Positions 2,230-60,090 of a stretch of 64,000 nt of DNA are shown one piece after another. The stretch's first letter is position 1, and the number at the start of each line of letters is the position of its first letter. Under the pieces are notes generated by a model. That model saw only the letters and a list, made by a program, of their open reading frames with translations. It was not told where the DNA came from and did not search any database. Where the stretch lies: IMG/VR virus record IMGVR_UViG_3300018080_000098, positions 1 through 64,000 of that record; one strand, given 5' to 3'. The position numbers and the translations under genes are program-made.

Positions 2230-2268
2230 TTGCTTTTCCTCGCAAGTTGTTTTTCCGTCCGACTGTTC

Positions 2269-3073: not shown

Positions 3074-3139
3074 CGCGTTTCTCCGTTTCGCAAATCGTCG
3101 TACTGCCCCGGGATGGCGCAGTAGATATCCACAGTCATC

Positions 3140-4408: not shown

Positions 4409-4493
4409 CTGCTTGTCCTCCGATGCGTTTTTCCATCCGACGCAATCGAGAATATCAAATCAACTTGACGTTGTCAAGAAAAAATTTCGACGG

Positions 4494-5065: not shown

Positions 5066-5200
5066 GGGGATTCTCCTCGCAAATTGTTTCCGTCCGACGC
5101 GATCAAAAATATCAAACGCGAAAAAATTTGTCAACAAAAATCGGCGCGTCGAGTGAGCGAGTATGTTATCTTCTACTGTACCCCAAGGAAAAGGTGAACT

Positions 5201-6687: not shown

Positions 6688-6704
6688 TGTGCTCTCCGTT
6701 TCGT

Positions 6705-7364: not shown

Positions 7365-7437
7365 TTTTCTTTTCTCCGTTTCGCTGCGTTCAAAATATCA
7401 AAACAACTTTACGTTGTCAAGAAAAAAATTCGCCGCC

Positions 7438-8374: not shown

Positions 8375-8509
8375 TTGTTTCTCCGTTTCGCATTGCACGG
8401 AAAATATAACAACCGCGCGCCGCCGCGTCAACAAAATTCGGAATTTTTCAGCAGCCTTTTCTTACTTATTCTCTAGCAGACATTCCTATCCACACAGGAG
8501 ATTTCTATC

Positions 8510-10787: not shown

Positions 10788-10801
10788 TCTGCCCTCCGTT
10801 T

Positions 10802-11287
10802 CTATCGAATAGGCTCCTCAGCCTTGCGCATCTTTTCGACCAGCTCCTCAGCCACATCCCAAGTGTGTTTCATCTCCACACCCGTCATGCTGATAGCCGC
10901 AGCCCCACCACCAAACTCCCCACTACGCGGTCTGGTACACCCAGCGCTCCAGGTCATCGTCCAGATAGTGTGGTCGTCTGTCGTCTCCAGAACGTCCGAC
11001 AGAAAATAAAGCACCGTCTCCACGGCAACACCCTCGTCCGACATCACAGTCAGATAGGTCTTCCCATCATCCTCCTGGATCTTCAGATAGAAACCCACCC
11101 CGTAGTCGTGGATAGATTCCTGTAGGTCTTCCGAGAGATCCCTGTAGACAGCGTCAACCTCCTCCGGCAATTCCTTGTCCGGATTGTCAGCAACGAAATT
11201 GATCGCCGCGAAAATACCCTGAGCCACCTTCGCCTGCTCCGGCGTTACCAGATAGCTCTCCGCAAACTCACTGTAGTAATCTGCCAT
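10802..11287 (-). CDS. Hypothetical protein, paralog of 2498-3073
   Basis: WSAGCTRPRSGEFGGG. Confidence 0.8.
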   Translation of the reverse strand: MADYYSEFAESYLVTPEQAKVAQGIFAAINFVADNPDKELPEEVDAVYRDLSEDLQESIHDYGVGFYLKIQEDDGKTYLTVMSDEGVAVETVLYFLSDVLETTDDHTIWTMTWSAGCTRPRSGEFGGGAAAISMTGVEMKHTWDVAEELVEKMRKAEEPIR

Positions 11288-11586
11288 CTTGTTTCTCCGT
11301 TTCGCAAATCACCCACCGAAAATATCACACCGCACTTGACAACGTCAAGTAGAAAATTCAAACGGCCACAAATCCCGCATTACCTTCTCTACTCCCACCA
11401 AGTTAGGCTCCCACCATTCACCCTCCCCCAACACCCACAGTACCCAACCTTTTCCCTCGCGCTCCAGCATTGCCTGGTTGCGCAAAGCGATCTCCTGCAA
11501 CCGGATACGGAGCGTGCGATATTTCGGGACAACTGGAGAGCCGTCTCCGAAAGTATTGGCTAGGAGTTGGTAGTCTGCTTTGGCCA

Positions 11587-12434: not shown

Positions 12435-12521
12435 TTCAGCAGCTCCTAGTTGTTTCCATCCGACGCGATCAAAAATATCAAAACCGCCGCGCGCCGTCAA
12501 GAAAATTCGACAAAATATTTT

Positions 12522-13590: not shown

Positions 13591-13622
13591 TCCCTTTTCT
13601 CCGTTTCTTCTGTTGCCTACCA

Positions 13623-14363: not shown

Positions 14364-14439
14364 CGTTTTCTCCGTTTCTCAATTCGTGCGACAAAAATAT
14401 CACACCGAACTTTACGTTGTCAAGAAAAATATTCGACGA

Positions 14440-14941: not shown

Positions 14942-15331
14942 TTAGCACCTCACCCTTTCGTAAGCTTCCTCCAGGTGACGTTCCCACGCATCCATCGCGT
15001 CGAAGCGACTACCACCCGTAGCCTCGTACAGCTTGTCGTGGAAATCCCCTACAACCTCACGGACTGCGGTATCTCCCGCTTCGCCGTAGCTCTTGGTGCG
15101 TTGCATACGCAGCCACTTGACAATGTAGGTGACGAGTACCTGCCGACGCTTCTGCGTCGAGACGCGCCCTTCTTTCTCCTTCGCCTTTTCGAGTTTGTCT
15201 ATCGCATCCTGAGCGATAGCCTTGAGCCGCTTGTTCCCCTTACTGGTGAACATACCCCACCGCTCGTAAGGCTTGAGCTCCCTCTCCACCGTTTCTCGAT
15301 GGACCCTCTCGATCCTGATCATGGGTGCCAT
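14942..15331 (-). CDS. Hypothetical protein
   Basis: MAPMIRIE start follows the GAAACGGAGG RBS. Confidence 0.7.
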   Translation of the reverse strand: MAPMIRIERVHRETVERELKPYERWGMFTSKGNKRLKAIAQDAIDKLEKAKEKEGRVSTQKRRQVLVTYIVKWLRMQRTKSYGEAGDTAVREVVGDFHDKLYEATGGSRFDAMDAWERHLEEAYERVRC

Positions 15332-15882
15332 CCTACTACCTCCGTTTCGTTCTGATACACCAGAGAATTGCAGTTGGGACAAATCCCCTGCGGGACCGTG
15401 TCCCCAGGAGAAACCCGATCTACCACCAGCGGGTCGGGCCAACGATACTTCAGCTTGCCTACCGGCCACCGGTTTCTTCCGCACGCAGGATTGCTGCACG
15501 TAAGCACAGGCTCCTCTGCGATAGCCTTCGCCAGATCGTCCAAGCTTACCTCGTCTACCTCACCGCCCCGGTAAACATAAGAGAAAAGAAACCCCTCGCA
15601 GTAGAAGGTCTGGTAGGACCCATCTTCCACAAAAGGCGCAATCTCCTCGTAGAACTTTTCCTCGTAGTTCGACGACCAATTTAAGCTATTCGGATAGGCG
15701 TCCACAATATCTCCATCCTTCGTCATGCTCAACTCGATGCCGAAGTTTGCACAGACGTCATGGACGTCCTCACCTTTCGCAAACTCCTCCCCCAGCGAAC
15801 GCAGGTGCTCCACCATCGCTCCCACGTTTTCCTTTTTGATTTCGATGTTACCACCCTGACCAACGTATGCTGTCATACTCAT
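15319..15882 (-). CDS. Hypothetical protein with C-terminal zinc ribbon
   Basis: Leader carries both conserved motifs; CSNPAC...CPNC. Confidence 0.75.
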   Translation of the reverse strand: MSMTAYVGQGGNIEIKKENVGAMVEHLRSLGEEFAKGEDVHDVCANFGIELSMTKDGDIVDAYPNSLNWSSNYEEKFYEEIAPFVEDGSYQTFYCEGFLFSYVYRGGEVDEVSLDDLAKAIAEEPVLTCSNPACGRNRWPVGKLKYRWPDPLVVDRVSPGDTVPQGICPNCNSLVYQNETEVVGWHP

Positions 15883-15997
15883 GATGTTTCTCCGTTTCGC
15901 TCGTTTCCATCCGACGTGTCAAATATAACAACGCGCCACCGCACGGTCAAGAAAAATCGAATTAAAAAATTTTTTGAACGGGAAAGAAAAGGCGGGG

Positions 15998-16813: not shown

Positions 16814-17031
16814 CTTTTTTCTCCGTTTCCAATTCACCAATCGAAAACGAATTTAACAAATGCGAAAAAATCCGTCAAGAAAAAAATCGCACCGACCGCT
16901 CCCTCCAATATTCGGTTAAACCGAACGTCCCAACCCACCTTCCCCCTTGTCAAGTTTTTATTCTGTTGTGTGAGAAATATTCGACAGGAAAGGTGGGAAG
17001 GGGTGGGGGCTCGAACGGCCCCCGGAAACTC

Positions 17032-17826: not shown

Positions 17827-17878
17827 ACTCTTTCTCCGTTTCTCTCTTTCGAGTTTATCCTACGCCTTCCAATAAGGC

Positions 17879-19609: not shown

Positions 19610-19649
19610 TTCTTTTCTCCGTTTCTTTCCCTACTTGACAACGTCAAGC

Positions 19650-21378: not shown

Positions 21379-21573
21379 TTTTGTTTCTCCGTTTCGTTGC
21401 TCCACCAATCAATTTAATTCGGTGGAACCAGCTTGTCAAGAAATTCAAATTGGACGAATCGGGTCCGATTATTTCGGTGCAAAATATCACACGCTTCACG
21501 GATACTCCAGGGTATTTTCCATTGCGCACGATAAGCTATTGCCCTCCCTATTTTGTATAGAGAGAGCTACCCT

Positions 21574-22673: not shown

Positions 22674-22694
22674 GCCGTTTCTCCGTTTCCCCGG

Positions 22695-23036: not shown

Positions 23037-23103
23037 CTCGTTTCTCCGTTTCAAAAATCGTGATCACAAAATATCAAATCGACTTGACGTCGTCAAGTAT
23101 TTT

Positions 23104-23715: not shown

Positions 23716-23939
23716 CACAACCTCCAGCAGTTCGCCGTCCGACAACACATATTATGCACAGCAACTTTACGTTGTCAAGTGAAATCGAATTTTATTAGTT
23801 CGAGTGCGAAATATCACGCAAATAGCAGCTACATACCCGTAGCTGGTACTACAACAGGGCTTGGTTATCCGAACCAATAAAATCGGTCATTGCTCAATTT
23901 TGCCCTGCTCGGCCAGCTGGCTCACGTGATTACAGGTAC

Positions 23940-24649: not shown

Positions 24650-25519
24650 CTACTCGCCGTCCGCAACCTCGGTCAGCTTCAGCTTCAGCTTCCGAGTACA
24701 CGCCTTCAGCAGCGCCTCCCCGTCAGCCTCACCCGCGGCGAACGTGAGCGCCATGATCACCAGCTTCCGAGCATCCCCCGTGGGCACCGTGTCACCCTTC
24801 ATCTCGGACTGGTTCAGCCCCCGCATGATCTTCACGATGTCACGCTTCCCAGGACGACGGGCCATCCCCGTCACCTGCGCGGCAGCCTTGGCCGTCTTGC
24901 GCCGCTTGCCACCCGAAACCACGAGCACCTTGTCCAGCATCCTCTTCTGGTCCGCAGCCTTCACCTTCCGAGCGATGATCAGCCCAGCCTCGAGAGTCAC
25001 CTTCCCCGTGTCCACCGCGTCCTTCAGAGCCTTGCACGCTCCGGCCATCGTCGTCATCTGGTCCACCCAGCCGACACTCTTGTTGACCTTCACGCTGATC
25101 TCCTTCCCCGAAAACCCGCGCTTCTTGTACTCGCGCACCAGCGCCACCTTGTCCGTCAAGGTGAAGTCCTCTCGGTTCAGATTCTCCTTCACCGCCAGGT
25201 CGAGCGCCTCGTCCTCGTCCACGTCATGCACGATGACAGGAATGCGCATCTCCATCTCCGGGTCCTCGGAGAAAATCTTGCGTAGAGCACGAATGCGCCG
25301 CTCACCCGCAATCAGGATGAAAGGCTGCTCCGGGTTCGCCCGGTCACGCCGCACCCACAGCGGGTCCAGTACCCCGTTCTCCTTGATGTCCTCCGCCAGA
25401 TCCTCGATCCCCTCGAACACCGTTCGCGGGTTGAAACCATCGACCACCTGAATGCGCTCGGGGCTGTCCACCGAGTACGCATTCGACCGAAACACACCAT
25501 CCAACTTTCTCATCGACAT
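24650..25519 (-). CDS. parB: ParB/Spo0J-like partition protein
   Basis: NPR...IEDLAEDIKENGVLDPLWVR...LIAGERRIRA (Box II)...ENLNREDF, followed by an HTH. Confidence 0.9.
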   Translation of the reverse strand: MSMRKLDGVFRSNAYSVDSPERIQVVDGFNPRTVFEGIEDLAEDIKENGVLDPLWVRRDRANPEQPFILIAGERRIRALRKIFSEDPEMEMRIPVIVHDVDEDEALDLAVKENLNREDFTLTDKVALVREYKKRGFSGKEISVKVNKSVGWVDQMTTMAGACKALKDAVDTGKVTLEAGLIIARKVKAADQKRMLDKVLVVSGGKRRKTAKAAAQVTGMARRPGKRDIVKIMRGLNQSEMKGDTVPTGDARKLVIMALTFAAGEADGEALLKACTRKLKLKLTEVADGE

Positions 25520-25618
25520 TTAATCACCTCCGGTAATTTGTTTTCCGTCCGTTCACGCAATCAAATATAATTGCCGAACAATACAACGTCAAGTAAAAAA
25601 TCGAATTTTCTGTGCAGA

Positions 25619-25918
25619 TTATTTGGCGGCGAGAATACGCCGAGAAGGAAGGTCCGCGTAGACAGTGAAGCTTTTTGTTTGGCTTACAGGACGATAACCA
25701 CGATGTTTCATCGTGCGTGTGTTGACCAGGCGCTGGAACTTTTCCTTGCCAGTCTGGAACCCGAAGTCGCACATATCGTTCAGGTCATCACGCATAAAGC
25801 GTGGAGGCCATAGAAAGGAGCCCGGTGTGGGAGTAAACGTAAGCCCGAGATGTTGCTGGTAGTACCAGTCCACAATCCATTGGTTCTGCGTTTCACCAGT
25901 GAGGGCGTTGCGCAGCAT
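25619..25918 (-). CDS. Hypothetical protein
   Basis: ORF track; packed between its neighbours. Confidence 0.5.
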   Translation of the reverse strand: MLRNALTGETQNQWIVDWYYQQHLGLTFTPTPGSFLWPPRFMRDDLNDMCDFGFQTGKEKFQRLVNTRTMKHRGYRPVSQTKSFTVYADLPSRRILAAK

Positions 25919-25923
25919 CTTTA

Positions 25924-26331
25924 CTAGGTCATCTTGCTCCGCACGATGTGGATTATTTTGTCAGCTCGAGCCTTGAGCTTCCGAATGATCAGACGTTCAT
26001 CTTTCAGGCGCACGACGTTCAGGACGAACGAACTGAAGGCGATATCAAATTTTTCACCCAGCTTCGGTTCCTGTGTAGTGACGCTACCCTGCTGCCACCC
26101 GTTGCCATGAGTACGATGGTTGGGATCGTAAGCGTAGACCTTACAGCCCAATGCACGCAGGTAGTCTGCGTTGCGCCCGGATTTACCTGCGCCCCAGTCG
26201 AGCACGCGCGTACCTTTTTTGAAGAAGCCTTTCTTCGCGAGCCAGCGGATGGCTGGGGATGCTTTGCCACTGATAGACGTGGCACCCTTTTCTACGGCTG
26301 CGCCTTTATAGGCGCGTTTCTTTTTCGACAT
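25924..26331 (-). CDS. Small class I SAM-dependent methyltransferase
   Basis: VLDWGAGKSG motif I; YDP; FSSFVLNVV. Confidence 0.8.
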   Translation of the reverse strand: MSKKKRAYKGAAVEKGATSISGKASPAIRWLAKKGFFKKGTRVLDWGAGKSGRNADYLRALGCKVYAYDPNHRTHGNGWQQGSVTTQEPKLGEKFDIAFSSFVLNVVRLKDERLIIRKLKARADKIIHIVRSKMT

Positions 26332-26400
26332 GTGCGACCTCCGTTTCGCTACATCGAACGTAGCAAATCCGCATTACGACGTCAAGTGGAAACGGAATTT

Positions 26401-26598
26401 TTAGAGGCCGAAGAAGAGGGAAAGGTGGGAGTCGCTTCGACGTTGGAGCTCCTCTTTCGCAACATGGATAGCCAGGAGCTTTCCGTCGAAGTGGTCTGTC
26501 AGTGGTCGTAGAAGGTTTCCTGCTTCAAGCACCTTGACGATTTCCTCGTCGGTGTACTCGGTGAAAGAATCCCTTAGATGCTTTTCATACGCTGTCAT
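26401..26598 (-). CDS. Hypothetical protein
   Basis: GAAACGGAGG RBS directly after the tRNA-like RNA. Confidence 0.65.
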   Translation of the reverse strand: MTAYEKHLRDSFTEYTDEEIVKVLEAGNLLRPLTDHFDGKLLAIHVAKEELQRRSDSHLSLFFGL

Positions 26599-26633
26599 TG
26601 GTTGCCTCCGTTTCATTGGTGTTGGGTTGGTAG

Positions 26634-26758
26634 TGGAGCGCCAGGGATCGAACCTGGATCGGGTACGGAGCTTGCGAAACGGAGATGAAAGGCAAGCAGC
26701 CTAGGCGGGATCAGTTGTCGGACGGAAACCGCTACCCGATAGCCAAATCCTTCGCTCC
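26634..26758 (-). ncRNA. 125-nt tRNA/tmRNA-TLD-like RNA with anti-leader loops
   Basis: Acceptor-like stem GGAGCG/CGCUCC plus A; stemless D-loop AAGGAUUUGGCU; helix AUCGGGUA(G)CGG/CCGUACCCGAU; T-arm CCAGG-UUCGAUC-CCUGG; internal stem GCUUGC/GCAAGC; own promoter. Confidence 0.8.
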
Positions 26759-26766
26759 TATGTTCA

Positions 26767-26794
26767 AGTATAACTACTCGTTATTGGATGTCAA
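26767..26794 (-). promoter_or_regulatory. Near-consensus promoter TTGACA-N16-TATACT for the tRNA-like RNA
   Basis: -35 at 26794-26789 and -10 at 26772-26767; predicted start at 26759-26761, immediately before the stem's first G. Confidence 0.85.
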
Positions 26795-27124
26795 GTCTTT
26801 CCTCGGATTATTTTTCTTCTTTCTTTTCGTACGCTTAAACGACTTGTCGTAGGGTGCTCGGCAAGGCATCTCTGCGTAGAGCTCTTTGGCTTCTGCGCGG
26901 GAGATTTGGCACGCCAGGATGTGCCCCTTGATGATGCTGATGACTATGAAATATTTATCATCTTTCATGCGTCGTCGCACCCACACCAGGGCTGACGTGC
27001 TAGAGGAGTCCACGGCTATGTCTCGCCACTTGTCTCCTTCGGCGCCCTTCCAGTCTTCTCCTGTAAGGGAGGTCTGGTAGTTCAGGGGAGCCATCTCCAG
27101 CAGCTTATTTTTAGCGTTACTCAT
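26774..27124 (-). CDS. Hypothetical protein
   Basis: MSNAKNK...; basic tail. Confidence 0.65.
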   Translation of the reverse strand: MSNAKNKLLEMAPLNYQTSLTGEDWKGAEGDKWRDIAVDSSSTSALVWVRRRMKDDKYFIVISIIKGHILACQISRAEAKELYAEMPCRAPYDKSFKRTKRKKKNNPRKDLTSNNE

Positions 27125-28256: not shown

Positions 28257-28343
28257 TTTGCTTCTCCGTTTCAATTGCTCTCACATAATAACGACGCATC
28301 AATACGTCGTCAAGAAAAAAATGCGAAAACAACTAACGGAGAG

Positions 28344-29491: not shown

Positions 29492-30910
29492 TTAAGGTAC
29501 CAGAGCTAGCTTCCGCCGACCCACCGAGAAGTCTTTCGTAGTAAACTCTCCCGGCGCCATCTTCGCCAACTCATTATTCACTCGCTGCCGAAGCTCCGCA
29601 GCAAAGTTTACCAGCTGCTCCAGCTCCGCATCCGTGTACTGGTCGTGAGGATACACGAGCTTCACCAGCCCAGACACCAGCTTCTCCACCGCCACCACGT
29701 CACGCCGTGTCATATTTGACGCCAACGAAACCTGATGTGCCACGTCACGCCGGTCCCGCGTCCGCAACGTTCCCAGCACCTGGCCCAGATAGTCCACCAC
29801 CAGGCCGTATCCCTGGCTAATCGAGGTCGGACTCAGTTTCGGAATTTCCCATCCTGGTAGATACCCGTGCACCCTGTCCAGAAAAGCGGTGTCCTGCAGC
29901 ATCGCGGGCAACGGCTCGAACAGATGTCCGTACCTACCATCCGGTTCCTTCCCCACCACATCCAGGTTCCCTGCTAGAACCATAGAGGAATCTGAAGAGT
30001 ACGTCTTGCCCCCTCGAGCAAACTGCCCCGACTCCATGAAATCCTTCAGCATGGAAATAGTCGAGATGTTGTCGAACCTCGTGCTTGCAATCTCGTCCAG
30101 CTGCACAATCTTGTACGACCCCAGGATGCCCATCGTTCCCGTAGTTACGTTGGCAAACAGGCTCGCCGCCGACACGTTCGCTCCCGAGGCAGTGTACACA
30201 GACGGGGATACGTTACGCAGCAGAAACGTTTTACCAGTCTGCCGAGGACCCAGCTCCATCACGTTCAGGTTGGGCTCCACAGCGGGCGCCAGCCGCACCA
30301 GGTACAGCAGCTTCTCCCGCTCGCTCAGCCTATCCGTCTCGTACCCAACCGACGTCAGCAGAACGTCGATCCACTCCTCCGTCGTAAACTTCCCCCGCCG
30401 CTGGGCAAAGTCTTCCGCGCTGGGGCAGTCTGCTTGGAAGGGCATCACGCCGACCACCACTACTCTGTTCGGGCTCCGCGGGCCAGCGGGTGGAAGATAC
30501 TTCAGGCGGTACGCGCCCCACAGTCCTCCCGTTAGCAGCCGGGGATAGTCATCCACGATCTGCTCCAGGATTTCTGCACGGTTCTCCCCGAGGAAAGTGA
30601 GCGCGCACACGAGCGCACCTGTTTTGAGGTTGACGGTTACCATCGCTTTGTCGATGATGACAACCTCGTGTTCCTTGACGAGCTTGGCCTTAACGACTTC
30701 GCGGGTATCGGCTTCGGGGAAGATCTTGGCCACGTGTTCGCGCATGCGTTTCATATCAGCTTGCGCTTGAGATTCTTTGACGTGGTTGGCGATCAAATAT
30801 TCGACAACGTACTGGGGGATGCGGGGGAGCCCGGCATCGCGTACGAGTGCCTTGCGGACCACTACTCCGTCGAAGATGCGTCTGAGCTTATGTACTGTTT
30901 GAGACTTCAT
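29492..30910 (-). CDS. brxL: BrxL-like MCM-family ATPase lacking the Lon protease domain
   Basis: IPQYVVEYLI; MELGPRQTGKT (Walker A); QLDEIA; LKDFMESGQFARG; DTAFLDRVHGYLPGWEIPK. Protein ends right after the ATPase domain. Confidence 0.85.
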   Translation of the reverse strand: MKSQTVHKLRRIFDGVVVRKALVRDAGLPRIPQYVVEYLIANHVKESQAQADMKRMREHVAKIFPEADTREVVKAKLVKEHEVVIIDKAMVTVNLKTGALVCALTFLGENRAEILEQIVDDYPRLLTGGLWGAYRLKYLPPAGPRSPNRVVVVGVMPFQADCPSAEDFAQRRGKFTTEEWIDVLLTSVGYETDRLSEREKLLYLVRLAPAVEPNLNVMELGPRQTGKTFLLRNVSPSVYTASGANVSAASLFANVTTGTMGILGSYKIVQLDEIASTRFDNISTISMLKDFMESGQFARGGKTYSSDSSMVLAGNLDVVGKEPDGRYGHLFEPLPAMLQDTAFLDRVHGYLPGWEIPKLSPTSISQGYGLVVDYLGQVLGTLRTRDRRDVAHQVSLASNMTRRDVVAVEKLVSGLVKLVYPHDQYTDAELEQLVNFAAELRQRVNNELAKMAPGEFTTKDFSVGRRKLALVP

Positions 30911-31016
30911 CCGTTGTAACACCTCCGTTTCGCATCGCACATCAAACATAGCAATTCCGCTTGCCGTTGTCAAGCGGCAATCGGGAATTGCAGCGAAATT
31001 TCAAACGGTTGGGAAT

Positions 31017-58222: not shown

Positions 58223-60090
58223 TATTCCACGACGCCCAGGATCTTCTTCCGGTGCACGGGGTCCTTCCCCATGTACGCCAACACCAATTCCTGGTCCTTC
58301 TTGCCACCCCATAATACCTGGAACACCTTCCGCGTCTTCGGGCTCATCGCGTAAATCTGCAAGTCCCCCGCTTCCGACTCTCCCAAACCCTTGAACCGCG
58401 TGATCCGCGTCTTCACGTTCCCCTTTATCTGCTCCCGTACCTCCTCCACCGTATCCCCGTACACCCGCTGCTTCGCCGTCACCCCCATGAACAATGGACT
58501 CTCCACTACAAACAACCGACCATCCTCAATCAGCTGCGGCATGTGCGCCGCAAAGAAAGTTAATAGCAGCGCCTGAATATGCTTCCCATCCGAGTCCGCA
58601 TCCATCAACAAGTAGATTCCCTTGTAGCGACACTTCGCCAGGTTGAACGCCGGACCAATCCCAGTACCCACCGCCTGCGTAACACTCGTAAGCTCCGCGT
58701 TCGCTAGAATCTTGTCGATGCCTACCTCCGCAGCGTTCTTCACCTTCCCACGTAAAGGCAAAATCTCCTGGAAATGCACGTTCTCTTTCAACGTCACCCG
58801 GGCATCCCGAGCACTCCCGAACGCCGAAGTACCCTCGACGATAAACAGTTCCCGCTCATCCGGAGAGCAATCAGAAGCTTCACACAGTTTGCCAGGTAGA
58901 ATACTCTTGGCACCCTGCTTGACTTTCATCTCGCGGATCGCTTTTTGCTGCTCCCGCAACTTCTTCTTCGCGTCCCGCAGCAACACCGCCCGCTCGAGCA
59001 GCTGCTTCGTCACGTCCGGATTCGCAGCTACGAATTTTCGCAGCGCGCTCTCCACAATCTCCTGTACCTGCTCCTCCACCTCTCGATTCTGCAAACTGCG
59101 CTTCGTCTGCCCCCGAAACTCTGGCTCCAAAACGTGCGCGTGCACAATCCCCACTACACCTTCACGCAGATAGTCACCCTTCAGTTTACCGTACTTGCCG
59201 CTGGCAGCCTGGTCCTGCAGCACCTTTTGAATGGCCTTCTTCACCCCCGATACGTGCTTCCCGTGCTCTGGCGTGCTCGTCACGTTCACGAAAGACGACC
59301 ACCACTCCGTACCAGCATCCGTCCAGACGAGTGCCACCTCCACCAACTCCTCTTCGACCACGATAGGCTCGTGTAGCTGAGCAACATCCGGATGCTCCTC
59401 CATGTACACCGGCAACATGTCCGCCAACCCACCGTCTGCCACAAACCGCTCTGGCGCTTCATTGTCCACCTTGAACTCCACTACCAACCCAGGGCACAAG
59501 TAGGCAATCGATTGTAGCCTTCTCCGAATGCGCCCAACGTCGAACTTCGCTCCTTTGAATATCTTCGGGTCCGGCCGGAACATGATCCGCGTCCCCGCCT
59601 GCATCTTCACCTTCGCCCTATTCACCTTCGTCGTTGGTTCGCCTCGCTCGAACGTCTGGTGATACACCTTCCCGTTCTGCACCGTCCACACAGACAGCTT
59701 CTCAGACAACGCGTTTGTCGCCTTGATACCAATGCCGTGCAGCCCCGCCACCGCGCTCGTGTACGCCCCCTGCCCAAACTTCCCTCCCGAGTGTAGCTTC
59801 GTGAGCACCGCCGTCAACAAAGGCAGCCCGGTCTTCTTGTGCTTCGATACAGGTATCCCGCGCCCGTTATCGATCACCACTGCTATCTGATTAGCCGTGT
59901 CAATTTTTACACCAACCGCAGTAACGTGCCCATCCATGAACTCGTCGATAGCGTTGGACACCACCTCCTCGAGAACATGATGTAATCCATCGGGGCCGGT
60001 GTCCCCGATGTACATGGCAGGTCTCAGGCGGATGGGCTCTAGGTTCTCGAGGATCTTTATTTTATCCCCGGCATAATGCTTCTTGCTCAA
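58222..60090 (-). CDS. gyrB: Type IIA topoisomerase subunit B (GyrB/ParE)
   Basis: IRLRPAMYIG, EVVSNAIDE, DNGRGIP, LHSGGKF, GLHGIG, VEGTSA, PLRGK, DADSDG, RFKGLGE. Confidence 0.95.
   Translation of the reverse strand: MSKKHYAGDKIKILENLEPIRLRPAMYIGDTGPDGLHHVLEEVVSNAIDEFMDGHVTAVGVKIDTANQIAVVIDNGRGIPVSKHKKTGLPLLTAVLTKLHSGGKFGQGAYTSAVAGLHGIGIKATNALSEKLSVWTVQNGKVYHQTFERGEPTTKVNRAKVKMQAGTRIMFRPDPKIFKGAKFDVGRIRRRLQSIAYLCPGLVVEFKVDNEAPERFVADGGLADMLPVYMEEHPDVAQLHEPIVVEEELVEVALVWTDAGTEWWSSFVNVTSTPEHGKHVSGVKKAIQKVLQDQAASGKYGKLKGDYLREGVVGIVHAHVLEPEFRGQTKRSLQNREVEEQVQEIVESALRKFVAANPDVTKQLLERAVLLRDAKKKLREQQKAIREMKVKQGAKSILPGKLCEASDCSPDERELFIVEGTSAFGSARDARVTLKENVHFQEILPLRGKVKNAAEVGIDKILANAELTSVTQAVGTGIGPAFNLAKCRYKGIYLLMDADSDGKHIQALLLTFFAAHMPQLIEDGRLFVVESPLFMGVTAKQRVYGDTVEEVREQIKGNVKTRITRFKGLGESEAGDLQIYAMSPKTRKVFQVLWGGKKDQELVLAYMGKDPVHRKKILGVVE

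Follow-up and report, generated by a model that had tools for sequence, protein, structure and literature searches.

What kind of RNA lies on the minus strand at 26758-26634 of an uncultivated 350-kb phage, and does its tRNA-like shape or the sequence of its loops say more about what it may do? To answer this, we examined a window of 64,000 nucleotides, positions 1 to 64,000 of IMG/VR record IMGVR_UViG_3300018080_000098. The initial annotation, made from the letters alone, had described a promoter-driven 125-nt tRNA/tmRNA mimic whose loops are antisense to two motifs shared by early phage mRNA leaders. The locus proved to be as described, on the minus strand and at the coordinates given, and the observation is confirmed. 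The interpretation was only partly supported, since a conserved structured RNA with invariant antisense segments was recovered, while specific mimicry of a tRNA or tmRNA was not supported. On present evidence it is probably a new regulatory RNA that can base-pair with the ribosome-binding sites (RBSs) or 5′ ends of about 25 of the phage's own early mRNAs.

A conserved promoter and a predicted structured RNA

The promoter, TTGACA and TATACT separated by 16 nt, matches 11 of 12 consensus positions, and the GGAGCG that opens the RNA starts 8 nt after the -10 hexamer. The RNA contains the helices proposed in the initial annotation, although the single-sequence minimum-free-energy fold alone is not remarkable (z = -1.75, with 11 of 200 shuffles folding as well) and mispairs the T-arm, so that these helices were recovered only from six homologues. 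Five further variants were found in metagenome contigs, all at the same syntenic position, with a flanking protein 61-77% identical to that of the window. A covariance model built for the RNA scores 148 bits at this locus and finds one copy per related locus, and an RNAalifold consensus gives the same five helices, P1 to P5. The parts of the locus are as follows, with related contigs labeled L020, L021, L022 and L026 where they must be told apart.

26789..26794, minus strand: -35 hexamer TTGACA, present in all six variants
26767..26772, minus strand: -10 hexamer TATACT, spacer 16; the homologues have TAnAnT at spacer 16-17, 7-9 nt before GGAGCG
26634..26758, minus strand: 125-nt structured RNA, helices P1-P5
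26753..26758, minus strand: P1 5′ strand GGAGCG (acceptor-like), pairing with 26635-26640; all 6 pairs, including A3-U, invariant in 6 of 6 variants
26635..26640, minus strand: P1 3′ strand CGCUCC, followed at 26634 by a variable discriminator base, A in the window and L021 and U in the other four
26741..26752, minus strand: J1/2, the "D-loop" of the initial annotation (AAGGAUUUGGCU), not conserved, with 9-12 nt of different sequence in the relatives
26733..26740, minus strand: P2 5′ strand, pairing with 26658-26665; two pairs show changes on both sides and one a G-U change
26705..26732, minus strand: P3 hairpin (GYGG/CCGC) with a large loop; its G-U pairs fit the minus-strand RNA only, and an alternative pairing of GG with the CUCCG segment is not excluded
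26717..26728, minus strand: seed 1, UUUCCGUCCGAC, inside an invariant 17-mer, antisense to the 5′-end motif
26670..26697, minus strand: P4 hairpin (GCUUGC/GCAAGC) with a 16-nt loop; stem kept through double changes in L026 (CUCAC/GUGAG) and a G-U pair in L022, weakened in L020
26676..26684, minus strand: seed 2, CUCCGUUUC, antisense to the early RBS motif
26666..26670, minus strand: third invariant segment, CUCCG, between P4 and P2
26641..26657, minus strand: P5 hairpin CCAGG-N7-CCUGG (T-arm-like), with an invariant stem

Across the six variants, 94% of pair positions form standard pairs and 3 pairs changed on both sides, which was matched by 4 of 500 shuffles. Helices P1 and P5 show no sequence change, whereas P2 and P4 are kept with compensatory changes. 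Three segments, GGUUUCCGUCCGACAAC, CUCCGUUUCG and CUCCG, are also invariant, while J1/2, the P5 loop and the 3′ half of the P3 loop drift. Neither the longer P2 of the initial annotation, with extra CGG/CCG pairs, nor our P3 could be preferred, as all the bases involved are invariant. The conservation of P1 and P5 in sequence, and not only in pairing, is not explained by an antisense model.

ARAGORN found no gene in the window, and Rfam gave no match at gathering scores. A permissive Rfam search gave only a weak tmRNA_permuted match on the T-arm (10.4 bits against a gathering score of 47, E = 5.8) and an irrelevant plus-strand hit, with nothing at the RNA in the five related loci. A megablast of 3.5 kb against 50,697 phage records gave no match, and a distant blastn of the RNA gave only 29-37-nt chance or T-arm matches. 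In IMG/VR, an 18-mer and D-loop/T-loop patterns returned only this phage's two contigs plus chance hits in coding DNA, and the seed and scaffold patterns returned only this phage. A scan of metagenome contigs with the scaffold pattern, chosen to find members with different loops, gave 113 stretches but no such member, as all but the already known family members were chance matches in GC-rich coding DNA. The seed pattern gave 11 chance hits in 185,579 reference genomes, none confirmed by the covariance model, and so no prophage or host clue. Among protein-based routes to relatives, distant homologues of the flanking protein lie in unrelated contexts, one of them archaeal, the 65-aa downstream protein found only itself, and two remote BrxL relatives have neither the RNA nor the motifs.

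Complementarity to early leaders

The two seeds are the only antisense copies in 64 kb of two leader motifs. The RBS motif GAAACGGAG occurs 20 times on the minus strand, all between 3 and 31 kb and 5-9 nt before start codons, and once on the plus strand, which is the RNA loop, against about 1.0 copies expected by chance. Genes at 31-64 kb use ordinary Shine-Dalgarno sequences and lack the motif. The 5′ motif GTCGGAYGGAAA (GUCGGAYGGAAA) has 5 exact minus-strand copies, each 6-7 nt after a -10 hexamer at the predicted +1 of early transcripts, and one plus-strand copy in the RNA, again with about 1 expected by chance. Two degenerate copies at 23743 and 25553 also lie behind promoters, and the 7 copies counted in the initial annotation hold only if these are included. 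The predicted target sites are listed here.

26606..26614, minus strand: RBS motif of the gene directly downstream (26401-26598), a possible target in cis with 11 contiguous pairs; the same arrangement occurs in all relatives
3081..3089, minus strand: RBS-motif target, 15 contiguous pairs
6694..6702, minus strand: RBS-motif target
7374..7382, minus strand: RBS-motif target, just after the promoter at 7420
8381..8389, minus strand: RBS-motif target
10794..10802, minus strand: RBS-motif target
11295..11303, minus strand: RBS-motif target, 15 contiguous pairs, after the promoter at 11348
13599..13607, minus strand: RBS-motif target
14370..14378, minus strand: RBS-motif target, after the promoter at 14423
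15340..15348, minus strand: RBS-motif target
15890..15898, minus strand: RBS-motif target in the leader that also carries the 5′ motif
16821..16829, minus strand: RBS-motif target, after the promoter at 16878
17834..17842, minus strand: RBS-motif target
19617..19625, minus strand: RBS-motif target
21387..21395, minus strand: RBS-motif target, after the promoter at 21439
22681..22689, minus strand: RBS-motif target
23044..23052, minus strand: RBS-motif target, after the promoter at 23096
26339..26347, minus strand: RBS-motif target, after the promoter at 26385
28264..28272, minus strand: RBS-motif target, after the promoter at 28313
30923..30931, minus strand: RBS-motif target, 15 contiguous pairs, after the promoter at 30973
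2252..2263, minus strand: 5′-end motif GUCGGACGGAAA at the predicted +1
4430..4441, minus strand: 5′-end motif at the predicted +1
5087..5098, minus strand: 5′-end motif at the predicted +1
12453..12464, minus strand: 5′-end motif at the predicted +1
15904..15915, minus strand: 5′-end motif at the predicted +1, same leader as the RBS motif at 15890
23732..23743, minus strand: degenerate 5′-end motif (2 mismatches) behind the promoter at 23778
25542..25553, minus strand: degenerate 5′-end motif (2 mismatches) behind the promoter at 25592

Contiguous pairing to the P4 loop is 10-15 bp, with a median of -18.8 kcal/mol for RBS sites, and at 3089 and 11303 it is 14 Watson-Crick pairs plus one G-U. 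Duplexes with the 5′ ends are 12-13 bp at -21 to -26 kcal/mol. Both seeds are predicted to be mostly unpaired in the six variants, with a mean unpaired probability of 0.59-0.68 for seed 1 and 0.80-0.92 for seed 2. Two details fit RNA-RNA pairing. The RNA has U opposite the variable purine of GGAGR (15 A and 5 G in the window) and G opposite the variable pyrimidine of GGAYGG, each of which can pair with both target variants, and complementarity to the 5′ motif stops exactly at the predicted +1 in 5 of 5 cases, never extending upstream of it.

The relatives' contigs use the same leader motifs, and all six variants keep both seeds letter for letter. As neither loops nor motifs vary in any relative found, the relatives show no co-variation between them. 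The one seed-flanking change, U to C in L026, stands opposite GGAGG in 4 of 4 visible sites, which is compatible with pairing but not significant. The RBS motif also extends 3′ (GGAGAAAC) beyond what the RNA can pair with, so another factor also constrains it. The leader of 15319-15882 carries both motifs, as had been claimed, but the order of the two seeds in the RNA is the same as the order of the two sites in this leader, and simultaneous binding would therefore need two separate loop contacts and not one continuous duplex.

The inverted motif copies could in principle be explained without an RNA. If the motifs worked at the DNA level, for example as operators for a phage repressor at early promoters, the inverted copies would be further binding sites and the RNA structure incidental. 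This would fit the fixed place of GTCGGAYGGAAA relative to promoters, and binding to double-stranded DNA does not depend on orientation. However, the RBS motif is positioned relative to start codons, including those of genes with no promoter nearby, the helices around the inverted copies keep pairing through compensatory and G-U changes that make sense only for the minus-strand RNA, a dedicated conserved promoter sits at a fixed distance from P1, and the invariant block of 17 nt is longer than the shared 12-mer. We consider this reading quite unlikely. It is more unlikely still that the plus-strand ORF 26685-26852 (55 aa) is a real small gene using the GAAACGGAG copy as its own RBS. The plus strand does read GAAACGGAG directly followed by ATG and an ORF of 55 codons, but no spacer separates GGAG from the ATG, all neighboring genes and promoters are on the minus strand, and the ORF would run antisense through a conserved promoter. 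The ATG is absent in four of six variants, whose loops read CUUCUCC, CUCUCC or UACCUCC, and we rejected the ORF on this ground.

A candidate regulator of early mRNAs

The best explanation, which we hold to be about as likely as not, is a phage-encoded base-pairing regulatory RNA that a host sigma-70-type RNA polymerase would start at or within 1-2 nt of the first G of P1. In this view it folds into a compact three-way junction in which P1 stacks on the T-loop hairpin P5 and P2 carries the two hairpins P3 and P4, displaying two invariant single-stranded seeds. Seed 2 would pair with the private extended Shine-Dalgarno motif GAAACGGAGR of about 20 early genes, one of them directly downstream on its own transcript, and since this is far more pairing than the 4-5 bp that the 16S rRNA can offer, it should block 30S binding. 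Seed 1 would pair with the first 12-13 nt of 5-7 other early transcripts. As the stable RNA accumulates, translation or stability of the early gene class would be shut off or re-tuned in a timed way. The sequence analysis establishes the promoter, the fold, the conservation and the complementarity with its statistics, whereas transcription, pairing in vivo, repression as the sign of the effect, and any RNase P/Z trimming remain matters of inference.

It is possible, though less likely, that the RNA acts only in cis, as a structured 5′ leader of the downstream operon (the 65-aa gene, a methyltransferase and a ParB-like gene) that would sense a ligand, protein or temperature and hide or expose the RBS 20 nt downstream through its anti-RBS loop, the other matches arising because all early genes share one RBS motif. 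The layout of promoter, structure, about 20 nt, RBS and gene is consistent with this, as are the synteny with the 65-aa gene in all six loci and the 11 pairs that the loop can form with its own downstream RBS, and a P1 helix closing a multi-helix junction is typical of riboswitch aptamers. No terminator lies on the minus strand of the window before the next gene, so the RNA could remain part of the downstream mRNA, while three of six variants have a U-run 2-4 nt after P1, which suggests a separate RNA. Against a purely cis role, seed 1 is the longest invariant block (17 nt) yet has no partner in its own transcript and matches the 5′ ends of other transcripts, the linker to the RBS is unconserved and offers no alternative helix, and no Rfam cis-regulatory family matches.

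The full model of the initial annotation, in which a tRNA-like domain is read by tRNA machinery (RNase P/Z and the CCA-adding enzyme, and perhaps SmpB, EF-Tu or the ribosome) that would deliver a guide function to the targets, appears unlikely. In its favor, the order of P1, an unpaired linker, a long helix and a T-arm abutting P1 with no linker is that of the tmRNA tRNA-like domain, the invariance of P1 and P5 is expected if a protein or enzyme reads them, and the 3′ part resembles tRNA-Ala genes of mycobacteriophages over 29 nt at 93% identity. The 5-bp T-arm stem closed by G-C is invariant, and its loops begin UUCGA, UUCAA, UGAGA, UGUGA or UGCGA, fitting the generic T-loop motif U-[U/G]-N-R-A in 6 of 6 variants. 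However, the TPsiC-type loop UUCGAUC of the window is UGAGAUC, UGUGAUC or UGCGACC in relatives, the canonical UUC is kept in only 2 of 6, and four of six loops lack U55 and three lack C56. Pair 3-70 is A-U in all six variants, where alanine charging needs G-U, and the discriminator base varies. P1 has 6 bp and not 7, no D-stem is present, and a branched P2-P3-P4 domain replaces the anticodon arm. No CCA directly follows the discriminator base, no tag reading frame exists, and the RNA is 121-125 nt with no ATG on the minus strand. The conserved D-loop analogue of tmRNA (GGAUUCGAC type), which contacts the T-loop and SmpB, is also missing, as GGAUUUGGC occurs only in the window and the relatives have the unrelated linkers AAGGUCGGCU, AAGGAUAACU, AAGGAUAGCU, AACCUUAGCU and AGUAAUGCU. 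No Rfam tRNA (RF00005) or tmRNA hit exists in any variant. What persists is the three-way-junction topology and the generic T-loop motif.

A more speculative and unlikely reading, which would be of great interest if true, is that the tRNA-shaped scaffold is more than a stabilizer and docks the RNA on the translation or tRNA-processing machinery. The RNA might then act as a trans-supplied, phage-private anti-Shine-Dalgarno, its loop reading like the 16S rRNA 3′ tail with one inserted G, or as a natural external guide that brings RNase P/Z to about 25 early mRNAs. Either way, the phage would have an orthogonal code for sorting its early messages, and the same logic might explain start-associated sequences in actinobacteriophages.

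Comparison with known systems

The RNA represents a structured RNA family from uncultivated jumbo phages with no Rfam counterpart, and shows how the three-way-junction fold of tRNA and tmRNA can serve as a scaffold without the identity elements of either. Its closest mechanistic analogue is the C4 antisense RNA of phages P1/P7, a phage-encoded structured RNA of about 80-120 nt in which two exposed loops pair with two short sites in a leader, one covering an RBS, and which lies upstream of, and is co-transcribed with, a target gene. The ends of C4 mimic a tRNA acceptor, and published papers cite cleavage of its precursor by RNase P. The present RNA likewise has two exposed segments complementary to two leader sites, which shows how it may work and not that it belongs to the family. 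No C4 match was found in the window or in five related loci even at E up to 10, the fold and sequence are unrelated, the sites recur at about 25 leaders across 30 kb and not in one operon, and 5′ processing may not be needed as the promoter sets the 5′ end. Bacterial Y RNAs (YrlA) and other tRNA-like modules are non-coding RNAs that also borrow a T-arm and acceptor-like module, but here there is no Rfam match, no Ro/Rsr gene nearby, and the ends form a short P1 and not a long Ro-binding stem.

Repeated motifs that extend the Shine-Dalgarno sequence of a whole class of phage genes have been known since 2011 as the start-associated sequences (SAS) of Cluster K mycobacteriophages, where a 13-nt motif that includes the Shine-Dalgarno core sits 3-9 nt before the start codons of 11-19 non-structural genes and is conserved beyond what 16S rRNA can pair with. 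Its function is still called unknown (PMC3203893, PMC11373665, PMC12699233), also in papers from 2024 and 2025. K1 phages carry one copy in the opposite orientation, which in Adephagia lies in the loop of a 13-bp hairpin in a structured non-coding region. The motif, phage group and host differ from ours, and no trans-acting RNA has been proposed there in the papers we read. The exact antisense copy is missing from the homologous hairpin in other K subclusters that still have SAS, so that a general rule is only partly borne out. In the present phage, a comparable motif class comes with a concrete candidate reader, a conserved RNA that displays the exact antisense sequence in a loop, which turns an open question into one accessible to a reporter assay with compensatory mutations. 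In phage T4, RegB and RegA similarly allow a large lytic phage to inactivate its own early mRNAs through a signal in their ribosome-binding sites (GGAG for RegB). Those are proteins, an endoribonuclease and a translational repressor, whereas the proposed reader here is an RNA, and if repression is confirmed it would be an RNA-based counterpart of the protein systems that large lytic phages use to switch off early messages.

A promoter-proximal RNA element and two recurrent leader motifs

To define the element, the promoter, the RNA, and the neighboring genes were mapped on the minus strand, on which all genes of the window run. The features located in this region were as follows.

26794-26789 (minus strand), -35 hexamer TTGACA
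26772-26767 (minus strand), -10 hexamer TATACT, separated from the -35 hexamer by a 16-nt spacer
26758-26634 (minus strand), 125-nt RNA, beginning with GGAGCG and ending with CGCUCC and an A
29492-30910 (minus strand), BrxL-like Lon-type ATPase gene
25619-26331 (minus strand), split methyltransferase gene downstream of the RNA
24650-25519 (minus strand), gene for a ParB N-terminal-domain protein
2298-30973 (minus strand), region of about 20 sigma-70-type promoters

The promoter hexamers match 11 of 12 consensus positions, the RNA begins eight nucleotides after the -10 hexamer, and the ribosome-binding site (RBS) of the next gene follows the RNA after about 20 nt, with no terminator found by the scan on this strand. 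ARAGORN found no tRNA or tmRNA anywhere in the window and Rfam found nothing at gathering scores, while in permissive mode the only match was that of the T-arm to permuted tmRNA, at 10.4 bits (E = 5.8). The single-sequence fold was unremarkable (z = -1.75) and did not even form the T-hairpin, so the structure proposed in the initial annotation had to be tested on relatives.

The window is the first 64 kb of a 349,793-bp IMG/VR contig, and a 55.5-kb contig is identical over the part compared. It encodes a family-A-type DNA polymerase and both subunits of a type II topoisomerase, and it has no close relative among 50,697 deposited phage genomes. The BrxL-like ATPase (Pfam BrxL_N plus BrxL_ATPase, E = 4e-102) is conserved about 3 kb upstream of the RNA in all relatives. 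BrxL is normally a host BREX defense component. The ParB N-terminal-domain protein is conserved about 1 kb downstream of the RNA in all relatives. The methyltransferase gene is split into ORFs of 135 aa and 99 aa in different frames, which match residues 2-132 and 138-230 of the intact 230-aa protein of the relative contig L022. This is a frameshift with TAG-TAA stops that could represent a pseudogene, an assembly error, or a two-piece gene.

Between 2 and 31 kb, about 20 sigma-70-type promoters (TTGACR, 17 nt, TATTTT-like, often TGNTATTTT) were found, many with an upstream T-rich tract and with very short leaders of about 25 nt. Beyond 31 kb the scan returned only two matches (59817 and 60295), both inside coding sequence and without the T-rich tract, so later genes presumably use other signals. 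The RBS motif, GAAACGGAG, occurs 20 times on the minus strand against 1.0 expected; every copy lies 5-9 nt before a start codon, and most belong to the first gene after a promoter. Genes at 31-64 kb use ordinary AGGAG/GGAGG sites and never this motif, indicating that it is specific to early genes. The 5' motif, GTCGGAYGGAAA, occurs five times on the minus strand, each copy starting 6-7 nt after a -10 hexamer, at the expected transcription start, and two degenerate copies sit behind two more promoters. Each motif has exactly one copy on the other strand, and both of these antisense copies fall inside the 125-nt RNA.

Conservation of the RNA and its relation to tRNA and tmRNA

A search with the 368-aa protein encoded 400 nt upstream found relatives at 61-77% identity, whose contigs are syntenic and carry the RNA between a ~116-aa gene and a ~65-aa gene, giving six distinct variants including that of the window. 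A covariance model built from these variants found one copy per locus and no second copy in the window. A scaffold-only pattern scan of the metagenome collection, chosen so that members with different loops would be found, and a subsequent seed-pattern scan of 185,579 reference genomes added no new kind of member.

In all six variants, TTGACA is followed by 16-17 nt, TAnAnT, and then 7-9 nt to GGAGCG, and the transcript should therefore start at or next to helix P1. P1 (GGAGCG/CGCUCC) and the stem of P5 (CCAGG/CCUGG) never change. P2 keeps pairing through two double changes and one G-U change, and P4 keeps pairing in the relative L026 through two double changes (CUCAC/GUGAG) but is weakened in the relative L020. 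Overall, 94% of pair positions form standard pairs and three pairs show changes on both sides, a value reached by 4 of 500 shuffles, while sliding the partners dropped pairing to 31-48%; with six close sequences, this support is modest but consistent. The G-U pairs in P3 fit only the minus-strand RNA. A plus-strand 55-codon ORF overlapping the region is a highly improbable alternative, as its ATG is not conserved. Three unpaired blocks are invariant, namely GGUUUCCGUCCGACAAC in the P3 loop, CUCCGUUUCG in the P4 loop, and CUCCG between P4 and P2, whereas the linker J1/2 (the D-loop of the initial annotation), the P5 loop, the 3' half of the P3 loop, and the base after P1 all differ between variants, showing that unconstrained positions have clearly had time to change. 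UCCGU occurs three times in the RNA, at RNA positions 32-36, 76-80, and 90-94, once in each invariant unpaired block, and both target motifs share the complementary ACGGA, which also fits the A(N)GGA core of CsrA/RsmA binding sites. A second same-strand copy of CUCCGUUU in L026 (5027-5034), just upstream of the -35 hexamer of the promoter of the 364-aa gene, is not conserved in the window and is probably due to chance. Three of the six variants have a run of 5-6 U starting 2-4 nt after P1 (L020:2318-2335, L022:6357-6375, and L145:2038-2055, the last from a further relative), while the window, L026, and the remaining relative, L021, have none.

Given the initial annotation of the element as a tRNA/tmRNA mimic, we compared these variants with the features of tRNA and tmRNA. 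The topology does match that of the tRNA-like domain of tmRNA, with a terminal helix, an unpaired linker, a long helix, and a T-arm that abuts the terminal helix. In all six variants the P5 loop, closed by G-C, keeps U at position 1, a purine at position 4, and A at position 5, which is the generic T-loop motif also found in RNase P, rRNA, and T-box RNAs. The identity elements, however, fail: pair 3-70 is A-U in all six variants, the discriminator base is A or U, no CCA is encoded, P1 has 6 bp, the tmRNA-like GGAUUUGGC exists only in the copy from the window, the canonical UUC of the T-loop survives in only two of six variants, and there is no tag frame. The RNA thus shares the three-way-junction fold of tRNA and tmRNA but is neither a tRNA nor a tmRNA, and charging or SmpB binding is unlikely. 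The full model of the initial annotation, in which the tRNA machinery is engaged, therefore remains an unlikely one, and "T-loop three-way-junction scaffold" is preferred to the tmRNA-mimic label.

Pairing potential and proposed regulation of early genes

The seed in the P4 loop can form 10-15 contiguous pairs with each of the 20 RBS copies, with a median predicted duplex energy of -18.8 kcal/mol, and the strongest sites, at 3089, 11303, and 30931, reach 15 pairs. The seed in the P3 loop can form 12-13 pairs with the five 5'-end motifs, at -20.7 to -25.8 kcal/mol. The two seeds are predicted to be 0.80-0.92 and 0.59-0.68 unpaired, respectively. Two details favor RNA-RNA recognition. At the only variable target positions, the RNA carries the base that pairs with both variants, U opposite A/G after GGAG and G opposite C/U in GGAYGG, and complementarity to the 5' motif never continues upstream of the predicted first transcribed base (0 of 5). 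Judged from the common 16S 3' tail, the 16S rRNA can offer these sites only GGAG(G), plus AAA across a bulged C. The RNA should therefore out-compete the 30S subunit, which is why repression is favored.

Taken together, the observation made in the initial annotation is confirmed and strengthened. Its interpretation is partly supported, since the tmRNA-mimic reading is not supported, whereas the guide-RNA idea is the best available explanation but is unproven. With moderate confidence, we propose that the RNA is a base-pairing regulator of the early gene class, which would act on unlinked leaders and probably also on the RBS directly downstream on its own transcript. The analysis itself establishes the promoter, the conserved structure, and the complementarity to the two motifs, while expression of the RNA, pairing with its targets, and repression are inferences from sequence alone, any trimming by RNase P/Z or CCA addition is no more than a possibility, and the case for pairing rests on complementarity rather than on co-variation of loops and targets. 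The model also does not explain the sequence invariance of P1 and P5 or the conservation of the RBS motif 3' of what the RNA can pair with. A purely cis-acting leader would fit the layout but not the 17-nt seed that matches the 5' ends of other transcripts, and we consider it possible but doubtful. Action of the motifs as DNA-level operators is very unlikely, as the registration of the RBS motif to start codons and the strand-specific covariation argue against it.

Comparison with start-associated sequences and C4 RNA

A parallel exists in cultured phages. Cluster K mycobacteriophages have a 13-nt start-associated sequence (SAS) at 11-19 early-gene RBSs, the function of which is still called unknown, and one opposite-orientation copy was noted by the authors in K1 phages (PMC3203893, PMC11373665, PMC12699233). 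In Mycobacterium phage Adephagia (JF704105), we found 16 forward copies and one reverse copy. On the transcribed strand, the reverse copy lies in the loop of a 13-bp hairpin (L161, our extract of this genome, 46560-46740, record about 58560-58740) within a strongly structured stretch (z = -6.0) of the 430-nt spacer between genes 92 and 93, where the G3 paper places the start of late transcription. The region is conserved in 182 Cluster K phages, but the exact antisense loop is kept only in K1-like genomes, and other subclusters that still have SAS show related pyrimidine-rich or different loops. The parallel is suggestive and not a rule.

The nearest worked-out analogue is the C4 RNA of phages P1/P7, which has two loops and two sites, one of them an RBS, is co-transcribed with its target, and has tRNA-like ends. 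The C4 model of Rfam does not match the RNA described here, and the resemblance is therefore in mechanism only. The RNA represents a new family, which in the proposed model would join the phage antisense regulators already described, and what would set it apart as unusual is a regulon-wide private RBS code.
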